Source of the DNA: Bugula neritina
Lineage: Eukaryota; Animalia; Bryozoa
Assembly (NCBI GenBank): GCA_964035545.1
Contig: OZ037768.1
Coordinates: 19,885,700 to 19,949,699, forward strand
Reading direction: 5' to 3'
Length of the DNA: 64,000 bases
Below, piece after piece: positions 6,967 to 11,718 of the stretch. Numbering within the stretch: the first letter of the stretch is position 1; each line of letters starts with the position of its first letter. The notes beneath the pieces were generated by a model. The model worked only from the letters and a program-made list of their open reading frames with translations. It had not been told where the DNA came from and ran no database searches. The position numbers and the translations under genes were made by a program.

Positions 6967-9900
6967 TTACTTTGTTGACAGTTTGTCTACTTCTGCGATC
7001 ACTCCTATACACTAAAACATTGCAAAGGATTTCAGTAAGCAGTTGCAATCAGTAAACACATTTAAATTGAACGGTGTTTTTAACTATATTTAAAGTCATT
7101 GTAAGTTTTTCTAAAATAATTTTTAAAACTAACATATAATTCACTTCAATGCTAACGTAATATGTAGTTTATATTATATATAGGCTCCAAAAATGCTGTT
7201 ATTAGAAGCTCCTGTATCATGACAATACAAGTGTACGGTAATTCAAAAGCAAAGAGCATTGAAATGTTGTAGCATCACATTTCAAAAGGAACTTTTTAGC
7301 TTCAAGCCCAAGTGCTACTATAAGCAGATATGTACAAGATTTTACACACAAATTTAAAAAAGCAAAGTCAAAGTTAAAAGAGAATAAAGTAATGCACTGG
7401 TGCATTTTATTCACTTTAAATTTTCTTGTTTCAAATTTTAGCTTTCAGCAATTTAGCTCTGCTTGGGAAAAAAAACAACTGTTATTGTGGTAACTAATCA
7501 ATACACAAATTAATAAGAAGTTGAATTTTTTAGCTAAAAAAACTAAAAGAAATTGAGAGCAGCTTTTCTATTGAGCTGTGCCTAAATGCAAAATATATAT
7601 TATTTCAAAAATTGTATTGTAGAACTCTGAAATAAATGAGCTCACGTCATATAAATTAATCAGACTACTGCTTATAATGTGTTCATCAAGAAAAGTTTAT
7701 TCTCATAAAAAACTCACGCAAGTTTATAGTCGCTATCCTTGTGAGAAAACCTGATGGAAGGGTTTTTGCTAAATTGGGCTAAGGACTTATTCAGATGGGG
7801 CACCGAAGCAATTATGATTGGATGCTCTTCCAACATCACCAATGAGCTTTGTCAGCTAGGGTTCGAACTCATGACTTCGTGCTTACTAGGCAAACGATCT
7901 AACCCCTAGACCACGGCTGTCCCATAAAAGTTTATTCTCATAAAACTTTTACTATAATTAATAATTTACCCAAGGGTAGAAAGAAGCTGCCGCTCGGCTG
8001 ACTTTAGACAGCTGTTCGTAAGACAAGCTACTCATCTCACTCTTCACTTCAGCGGCCACTCCTACAGGAACATCTTCTGCTTTCAACTCTTTTAGTTGGG
8101 ACAGGAAAGTAGAGCCAGCAATCACCTTTTTTATGTAGCCATAGTCCTAAAGATGCACAGCATAATGTGAGCTTCATTTCAACTAGTTATATATTTAGGT
8201 ATATAGAAACTCACAGCAAGCAGTGTTCCACAAATTAGACAAATTTTTGCACTTGTAGCTGTCGTAAATCTGCACAAGTAAAGAGATGCCTTTTTGATTG
8301 GTCAGCTTTCCTGCCATTTTGACCTAATTGGCAAAGACACACACACACACACACACACACACACACACACACACACACACACACACACACACACACACAC
8401 ACACACACACACACACACACACACACACACACACACACACACACACACACACACACACACACACACACACACACACACACACACACACACACACACACAC
8501 ACACACACACACACACACACACACACACACACACACACACACACACACACACACACACACACACACACACACACACACACACACACACATTTCTGTAAAA
8601 CCTTTCAGTAAAGCAATTTGTCACACATGACTGATGTGTCGATCTAGTGACTATTATGATGTTTATAATTAAGCTTGTTACAAACCTGTAATTCTCTTCT
8701 CTTGTATCCAAGTAGGACGAGTGTTTCTCTTATCACTGTTTTTACATCTTCTGGAGGAGCAGACAAGGATTTTACTTCAGTGACATCAGATTTTTTCACA
8801 CTAGATCTCAAGTCTTTTACAGCCTATCAGAATGAACCATAGAACATTGCAATAATCATTCCTACAAATTACTTAATAGCTCTATAGAATTATTATGCAC
8901 TCTAATTAATGTAATAGTCAAATATCTTACAGGTCTACGGCTTTGCTTCTTGCAACACTTCTTTGCAATACTTATAAAGGGAAATCTATGTAATCAAACT
9001 TTTATACCCAGAGCACACATTAGCAATTGAATTCTCTAAGCTTAAGATGAAGTTATTTTAAATCATAAAATTTCAAATCATAGGACTGCCGGCAGCAATT
9101 TGTTGCCTATTCCTCTACTTCAATCATTTAAAATATGAACATATTGCAGGTTTTTCACTAATTATGATTAAACTTTTTGTCCCTTAATATTTTTATGCAT
9201 TATAAAATTGATAAAAATTTGCTCTAGCAAATATGCAAACCATTATTCAGCTCACCAACTTTTTCTATTAACAGGTACTTTACCAACCTAGCTAATTATC
9301 AACAAAATATTGGTATGAAACTTAAATTGGCTAGATCATCATTTTGGCACACCTACAACAAACTATAGTATTTCAAGCAAATTTGCATTAAAAGCTACTT
9401 AGTGTTATTTTAATCTGAATAACTCAAGGACCTGAAGTTTCATATCAAAAGATTATACCAGACACTAACTCATTGAAGAAAATAGCATGAGAAATCTGAC
9501 ACAATAGCTTTATTTCTTATGTTATATTCATGTATCTGGTTTGGAGAGTTGTCTGACCTTGCTGATACTAGTTTTTAAAGCTAATGACCACTAAAACTTG
9601 TTAAAACTTTTAAAACTATGTGTTTTCAGCAATTGAGATAGATTATTTGTAATAAAATATTGTTCTGATAGTATTCTACTATGAGCAGTTGTGTGCACTT
9701 ATGTTTGAAAACAGGAGGAATGACAACTCCTATGGCATGTTACATTCTTGCTATATAGCTACAAGCTTAGCACACTGCAATTGAGTATATGATATATTGT
9801 AGTAGTTGAAGTAAACAAGTTTCTATTTATTTTGCTGCCAAACACAATTGACACAAGATCTATCTCAATGGTGCATTTTAATTGAATAAACCAGTGTTGA

Positions 9901-11718
9901 GCTTATAGTAAGTTACTACAACTACACGAAATTGATTAATCAAAAACAAAACAATGAAAGCTTGCACTGCTGTATTGCATAGCAGAGTTGATATAAAACT
10001 GGCAGCATGTATAAGGGTTATATGGTTATAAGGTCCACTATAGCCTTATGACTGACCAGGCATAGTTAGACTGAGCAGAGTTAGTGCTGGTTTACATAAG
10101 AATCTGAACACCGCTTGCTTTTGTACAACATTCATTCATATAAGCTTTACTGTAATTTTTGACCTTAAAATAGCATCAAATATGACAAATTTTTGAGCTG
10201 TAGTTATTAAGCCCTGCAAATTTTTAGCGATCTCTTTCCACTGCCAGATGACAAACTTTAAAGAGGTTATTTACCCAAAATAGCCATTCTAGTGAATCAT
10301 CAACAAACTCTGTTATAGAAGTTCAAACTTTGGTCCCATAAATTTCTTGCAGCTTAGTTACTCATAAATGCTAGCTTTCTGTTTACATTAGCTTCTGATC
10401 AGCAAAGTTAAGTAGTATGATTATTTTTACTCACTTTTTAAATAGTAGATTTATAATACAGGTGAGAATCAGTAGTTAAACTAATATGTTAGTAATGCAG
10501 TGCCTTTATAGTTGGATTTAAATAAAAAACTCACACAAGTTTAGAGTCGCTATCCTTGTGAGAAACCCTGACGGAAAGAGTTTTTGTTAAATCGGGCAAA
10601 GGACTTATTTAGATGGGGCACAGAAGCAATTATGACTGGATGCTCTTCCTAACATCACCAATGACCTTTGTTAGGGTTTGAACTCATGACTTTAAATTTA
10701 CAAAGCAAACACTCTAACCCCTAGACCACGGCTGCTAGTTAGATTTAAATGTTTAAATAAAATTCTTGAAGGAAAATAAGCAAAATAAATCTGCATATTG
10801 CTACTAAAACTCTACTATAACCTGCAACAAATTTCTGAGAACTAACAGCTGAATGTAATCATACTTTATATACTATTATATTAATGCTTTTATAAGCTAA
10901 TCTTTCAACAGTAGCTTATATACAGCTAATGTACATATAAAATTTGCACATGACTAACTTTAGAGCAGTACCTTTTTGCCTTCACCACCTGAAATACAAA
11001 AGGAGACTAGTTAGTATATGACTGTTACACACCTGGGTGCTGATAACTTTATAATATAGTATACGTTGCTATAACGCCTTGCATTTTTAGTTGGAGATTA
11101 TACTATATACACTATAATATATTATAATATATATACTATAATATATTATGCTTTGTAGACTTTATAACATCATAAATATGATTCAATTTTATTATAATAA
11201 TGACTATACATAGACCATATAATATGTAAAATATATAATATAATTATGTATTGAATCATAAAATTCTGTGATTACGACAAATTAAAAAATATCATTGAAA
11301 GCTGCTGAAAACATGGTTAGCTCAAATAACACTCTTTTATTATTACTAAATGCTTGAACTTTCAACTATAGCTTTGATTCTAAATTATTAAAATTAATTA
11401 AGATCAAACTAAGTTATTAACAAAAATAATGCCCATACTTATAACTACTAGTTTCATAATTGTTTGTTTAAAGCCTGGGTTTGGTTCGTTTATAGACAAA
11501 TTTTTGTAGAACTTGGACTTAGCCAAAACAGCTGCTTTGTTAGCACTTTGGACATAGTATGAGTGTATTATTTTGAAATAATCTAAATAAAATAGGCTAC
11601 ATAGTTTTCATTTGGCCTGTGCCTCAAAATTCAGTTGCAAATTTGGCATACTTTAACCTACTATCTAAAATCTTATTGGCTTACCTTTCTTGCTTGTACT
11701 GTTTGATGCATCAGCCAT
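6967..11718 (-). CDS. Small 136-aa protein consisting mainly of a dynein microtubule-binding-domain-like fold (5 coding exons)
   Basis: Exons 11718-11685, 10988-10972, 8823-8686, 8146-7970, 7011-6967; all GT-AG and phase-consistent. Protein: MADASNSTSKKGGEGKK-AVKDLRSSVKKSDVTEVKSLSAPPEDVKTVIRETLVLLGYKRRELQ-DYGYIKKVIAGSTFLSQLKELKAEDVPVGVAAEVKSEMSSLSYEQLSKVSRAAASFYPW-CIGVIAEVDKLSTK*. It aligns with the C-terminus of the neighbouring gene and by eye with dynein MTBD. The last three exons are better supported than the first two. Confidence 0.8.
7711..7923 (-). mobile_element. tRNA-derived SINE (family A), full-length copy with 20-bp target-site duplication
   Basis: Minus strand starts GGGACAGCCGTGGTCTAGGGGTTAG (A-box-like) ... 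GAGTTCGAACCC (B-box). AAAAGTTTATTCTCATAAAA occurs at 7691-7710 and again at 7926-7945. Related copies lie elsewhere in the window. Confidence 0.85.
8337..8589. repeat. (CA)n microsatellite, intronic
   Basis: Perfect dinucleotide tract of about 250 bp. Confidence 0.98.
10524..10735 (-). mobile_element. tRNA-derived SINE (family A), second full-length copy
   Basis: Colinear with 7711-7923. Flanked by TAGTTGGATTTAAAT (10509-10523) and TAGTTAGATTTAAAT (10736-10750), a 15-bp TSD with one mismatch. Confidence 0.85.

Follow-up and report, generated by a model that had tools for sequence, protein, structure and literature searches.

The small gene at the locus and its conservation

The stretch analysed here, which we call the window, covers 64,000 nucleotides (nt) of the Bugula neritina genome (contig OZ037768.1 of the 216-Mb assembly GCA_964035545.1, positions 19,885,700 to 19,949,699). 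Its minus strand carries a spliced open reading frame (ORF) of five exons, with GT-AG at every junction, whose 411 nt encode a predicted protein of 136 amino acids (aa; 14.8 kDa, pI 9.2) resembling dynein's microtubule-binding domain (MTBD), a domain usually regarded as a dynein-only part. The initial annotation had proposed just such a gene, and its exons, splice ends, open frame and quoted peptide pieces are all present in the sequence. It had further proposed a product with no motor or stalk, which the frame bears out: between a conserved start and stop, the small gene encodes neither the AAA ring nor the long coiled-coil stalk of a dynein heavy chain (about 4000-4600 aa), with some 8 residues ahead of helix 1, 14 beyond the helix-6 Trp, and no prolines in these segments. 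Equally absent are the transglutaminase-like core and Ig-like_KY domains of KY/hillarin proteins proper; Ig-like_KY domains do occur in the neighbouring KY/hillarin-like gene, 2 kb upstream and also on the minus strand (Table 1). An in-frame stop stands about 60 nt upstream of the ATG, and an AATAAA hexamer lies at about 6786, beyond the last exon. Exon 2 is the least certain of the five because its splice scores are modest.

Table 1. Features of the window (CC1 and CC2, the two strands of the dynein stalk coiled coil)
Feature	Position	Strand	Description
Exon 1	11685..11718	-	start codon and leader, aa 1-11; strong phase-1 donor
Exon 2	10972..10988	-	17-nt micro-exon, aa 12-17; brings the frame back
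Exon 3	8686..8823	-	short CC1 stub and MTBD helices 1-2, aa 18-63; K27, K28, E33, K35, PP motif
Exon 4	7970..8146	-	MTBD helices 3-6, aa 64-122; K69, E107, K111, R114, FYxW motif
Exon 5	6967..7011	-	short CC2 stub and stop, aa 123-136
KY/hillarin-like neighbour	13794..27875	-	18 exons, 982 aa, open gene model; Pfam Ig-like_KY E 1.8e-20
Neighbour's MTBD-like domain	13794..15710	-	last three exons (15710-15555, 14489-14304, 13841-13794); both internal intron positions and phases as in the small gene
SINE-like element, copy in intron 4	7705..7927		
SINE-like element, copy in intron 2	10522..10740		
CA/GT microsatellite, intron 3	8337..8589		also in L039
CA/GT microsatellite	12385..12900		
CA/GT microsatellite	42100..42750		

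The small gene is conserved and unusual. The five exons are all present in L039, a metagenome contig of a related lineage, as are the start, the stop and the eight splice sites, and the two proteins are identical at 120 of 136 residues. Over the whole coding sequence the nonsynonymous and synonymous rates (dN and dS) are 0.060 and 0.221, a dN/dS of 0.27 (Fisher p 0.0002) that falls to 0.10 in exon 4. The coding sequence has 0 gaps in 411 nt (p about 0.005) and no premature stops, while identity across the aligned introns is for the most part 85-89%, and gaps there number about 1.3 per 100 nt. That the locus is a decaying duplicate or pseudogene without function is thus very improbable: its long branch, its loss of the helix-3 Trp and its presence in just two related lineages would suit decay, and the low dN/dS, the freedom from stops and indels and the eight retained splice sites would not. 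We therefore read it, tentatively, as an independent and presumably expressed gene under selection that encodes a free MTBD-fold domain.

An alternative that we consider improbable, though less so than decay, is that exons 3-5 give the KY-like neighbour an alternative terminal cassette, spliced from 15931 (phase 0) to 8823 (phase 0) to give a protein of about 970 aa with its MTBD-like tail swapped. The two genes share a strand, lie 2 kb apart and have compatible phases, and the modest splice scores of exon 2 point the same way. Against this, the ATG, the exon 1 donor and the micro-exon are all conserved and jointly restore the frame, with 29 nt around the exon 2 acceptor and branch unchanged in L039; conservation over the 280 nt that precede the ATG is 93.5%, compared with 85-89% in most intron stretches; and poly(A) hexamers follow the neighbour's own stop. 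A 1-nt indel in L039 about 10 nt ahead of the ATG argues against upstream coding. Stand-alone and cassette forms could also coexist.

Only the window and L039 yielded the bare form, which looks lineage-restricted; a query with exon 4 against metagenomes gave no confirmed relatives. Candidate stand-alone orthologues among short NCBI proteins were not accepted, since those that were checked seem to be parts of longer genes, and a 966-aa match (P0002) was spurious, being a light-harvesting polyprotein. The introns also hold a SINE-like (short interspersed element) sequence of about 220 nt in two copies, 84-91% alike; both are absent at the L039 locus, and are therefore either recent insertions or were lost in L039. 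Long CA/GT microsatellites occur in intron 3 and at two further places in the window.

Homology to dynein and to a non-motor family

Searches of Pfam, PDB, AlphaFold and protein databases were made exon by exon, and the joined 136-aa protein was compared in local scripts only. In the latter it scores 58 bits against a profile of dynein MTBDs from the same assembly, where the best of 2000 shuffles reaches 8.5, so the similarity is not a matter of chance, and HHalign gives a probability of 98.6% over 101 columns. The MTBD homology put forward at the outset thus stands across helices 1-6, and the cytoplasmic dynein-1 sequence quoted with it agrees with PDB 6RZB. Against the Pfam MT profile (PF12777), exon 3 reaches 12.4 bits (E 0.077) and full-domain relatives 15-18 bits, all below the gathering cut-off of 24 bits, and exon 4 alone has no match in Pfam MT, among PDB sequences or in the ESM Atlas. 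With exon 3, phmmer against the PDB gives 29 rows, of which 27 can be recognised as dynein heavy chains from their name or length (the best being DNAH10, E 0.0012), and the ESM Atlas returns an MT-labelled cluster at a score of 0.97; an exon-3 family profile reaches E 4.6e-7 against the PDB. For the whole-domain fold test a natural relative, P0059, stood in for the small protein, and matches 6RZB from end to end (E 9e-5). The AlphaFold2 model that bears on exon 4 is all helical (predicted local distance difference test score, pLDDT, 77), and its best structural matches, though weak, are dynein MTBDs, in register.

Compared with the dynein heavy chain MTBD (PDB 3ERR, 6RZB, 6KIO, 8I3J), the small protein lacks the linker and the stalk prolines as well as the ring and long stalk, and therefore has no registry switch. 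It also differs in its introns, its FYxW motif, a shorter helix 5-6 loop and a Tyr in place of the helix-3 Trp. Two observations concern dynein genes elsewhere in the assembly. In an outer-arm-type dynein gene on C1 near 20.317 Mb, the exon that encodes MTBD helices 4-6 is present as two near-copies in tandem, which may be mutually exclusive and would then give alternative microtubule-binding feet, and three small contigs (C125, C193 and C41) carry dynein genes that read TAA and TAG as sense codons and look like ciliate contamination.

The comparison with dynein-1 was sound as to homology but missed the nearest kin, a non-dynein family whose domain ends the KY/hillarin-like gene upstream. That gene encodes an N-terminal MGCGAS (a possible lipidation motif), a transglutaminase-like region recognised by resemblance, Ig-like_KY domains, helical repeats and the MTBD-like domain at its C-terminus. 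Exons 3-5 match its tail with 36% identity over 123 aligned columns (E 5e-21); the small protein's identity to KY/hillarin-like tails is 17-30% in a multiple alignment and 36-37% in the best local alignments. With these C-terminal domains (those of the neighbour, of bivalve and echinoderm homologues and of two mollusc clusters in the ESM Atlas, 751 and 214 aa) the small gene shares two introns, loop lengths, the FYxW motif and an early stop, but it lacks the KY, Ig, EF-hand and helical-repeat parts and the GKTG insert, and it is basic where the family is acidic.

The neighbour's architecture recurs in another animal (L074) and in bivalves, among them Pinctada (L080), three further genomic members have the same exon pair (C4 1.516 Mb, C4 20.43 Mb and C8 6.51 Mb, paralogous loci viewed with 1.5-kb flanks), and a more distant, EFCAB5-like member at C4 7.167 Mb has a C-terminal domain with MTBD-like sequence motif and fold. 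A profile search brought back 267 proteins. Most of them are single exons, and those with a named source come from molluscs and echinoderms. The small gene is thus not alone in having a motor-less MTBD fold, since an old non-dynein family carries the same domain; what is unique to it is the bare form together with a dynein-like charge pattern. In short, the small protein is neither a dynein nor a KY protein, but an offshoot, bare and divergent, of an undescribed family of non-motor MTBD-fold proteins. A literature search for MTBD-like domains outside dynein, with most subscription journals outside its reach, returned nothing relevant and no description of the domain.

Three other loci bear on the family. 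The copy on C4 near 20.43 Mb (L060/L062) is a fast-evolving version of the neighbour's last exons, with helical repeats and MTBD-like domain, and forms a second short derivative of this gene type. In Pinctada a long KY-like exon (L080, 19759-21831) lies within the annotated first intron of a 230-aa gene, and the NCBI model of that gene is therefore a mis-annotated fragment. An intronless contig (L082) has an EF-hand ORF and, immediately downstream of it, an MTBD-like ORF, an arrangement that matches an ESM Atlas cluster of proteins combining EF-hand and MTBD-like parts.

Origin of the small gene

Two phase-0 introns, one before the helix-3 DW and one after the helix-6 W, are common to the small gene, four paralogues and three bivalves, and both are absent in 11 of 11 animal dynein genes sampled. 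Given these shared introns, the FYxW motif and its adjacency to a family gene, the small gene very probably stems from the KY/hillarin-type MTBD family. The donor was likely this very neighbour: its last three exons would have been tandemly duplicated, and the copy would then have gained a short leader.

Direct descent from a piece of a dynein heavy chain gene would account for the dynein-like helix 3-4 length, the missing GKTG insert, the dynein-like motifs of helices 1 and 6 and the best PDB match to DNAH10, and approximately unbiased (AU) tests do not reject it. The two introns with their phases, which match the family and none of the dyneins sampled, largely refute this origin, and the family's loop lengths at helices 2-3 and 5-6, its stop position, its FYxW motif and the adjacent family gene also count against it, leaving it only a slight chance of being correct.

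The tubulin-facing surface and its possible use

The initial annotation had pointed to basic residues at the helix 1, 3 and 6 equivalents, and these are present: K27, K28, K35, K69, K111 and R114, alongside the acidic E33 and E107. In mouse dynein numbering, for which the 6RZB sequence served as anchor, six positions are basic in both the small protein and the L039 orthologue: those equivalent to K3298, K3299, R3306, R3337, R3382 and Dictyostelium K3472. Both proteins also keep the equivalents of E3304 and E3378. Family members are basic at 1-2 of these six positions; at the R3382 site, 103 of 113 have Asp or Glu and the small protein Lys. The GKTG insert, found in 107 of 113 members, is absent, and helices 3-4 are therefore of dynein length. 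Roles for R3306 and R3337 were reportedly described by Redwine in 2012. Tubulin contacts are summarised for K3298, R3382 and Dictyostelium E3390, R3469 and K3472 (PMC4987762), and K3299 lies beside beta-tubulin D427 (PMC6629372). According to the latter study the MTBD is primed for binding, with helix 1 and CC1 alone moving.

Overall, we favour a model, at a probability of roughly 0.45, in which the small protein is a free domain of MTBD fold, with six helices carried by a CC1/CC2 stub of very small length, that would dock on the tubulin intradimer groove in a dynein-like manner through the basic residues of helices 1, 3 and 6. Having no stalk or AAA ring, it would bind with a fixed affinity and without ATP switching, acting either as a passive binder of the lattice or as a competitor for dynein's motor footprint, plausibly in cilia or sperm. 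The initial annotation had offered a microtubule-associated protein, a competitor at the dynein/kinesin footprint and an axonemal accessory protein as candidate roles. A narrower version, in which a non-motor MTBD-fold duplicate has held or regained dynein's tubulin surface and tunes motor access in cilia as an ATP-independent occupant of the footprint, is more doubtful.

Several observations weigh against this model. In the tree the small gene is a long branch between the family and the dyneins (84/83 for grouping with the family versus dyneins), and AU tests leave standing both the neighbour clade (p 0.15) and several dynein sisters (p 0.11-0.26). Exon 3 alone has a dN/dS of 0.83, from few changes, and constraint is weaker, about 0.45, when scaled to intron divergence (about 0.13) in place of dS. 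The equivalents of K3334 and R3342 are Gly, and the helix-3 Trp, invariant in every other row, is Tyr. The K27/K28 assignment needs an ungapped alignment where BLAST favours a 3-residue gap versus the neighbour. Finally, several true dyneins score just 2-3 of 6, and the count of basic residues is therefore a weak predictor of binding.

A less likely alternative is that the gene is real and independent and its fold a protein-binding module, such as a decoy or regulator for the partners of the neighbour or of an axonemal complex, rather than a tubulin-binding one. Both the source family and the neighbour's own MTBD-like domain have an acidic residue at the key helix-6 site, and the family's binding partner is probably a different one. 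The same fold also occurs in PDB 9fqr_Xl (residues 1333-1493, at the end of a 1509-aa chain), probably EFCAB5 to judge by its length, although the sequence file labels the chain AKAP14; this protein lies in the radial spoke 3 (RS3) stalk and the RS2-RS3 bridge, in a report that leaves the domain unremarked and does not mention tubulin contact (PMC11779644). At the same time, the small protein departs from the family exactly on the tubulin-facing helices and in the direction of dynein, and its orthologue keeps all six basic residues. It differs from the EFCAB5 C-terminal domain, part of a large multidomain protein with a different intron, in being bare. The globular domain of Toxoplasma ICMAP2 (9ya2 chain L, an identity taken from residue range and size) shows 11% identity and differs in lying inside a 1678-aa dimeric protein that binds between protofilaments; the study of ICMAP2 draws no link to dynein (PMC12819142). 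The structural matches suggest that these two solved non-motor proteins carry an unrecognised MTBD fold.

To our knowledge, isolated MTBDs are known solely as laboratory constructs. If our model is correct, a natural stalk-free MTBD under selection would reveal the affinity state of the domain without its stalk, and the small protein may represent a new kind of motor-footprint competitor. The small gene and its neighbour, with the same fold and introns and opposite charge at helix 6, form a natural pair for asking what permits tubulin binding. More generally, KY-like tails, EFCAB5 and ICMAP2 would together expose an overlooked superfamily of non-motor MTBD-fold proteins.
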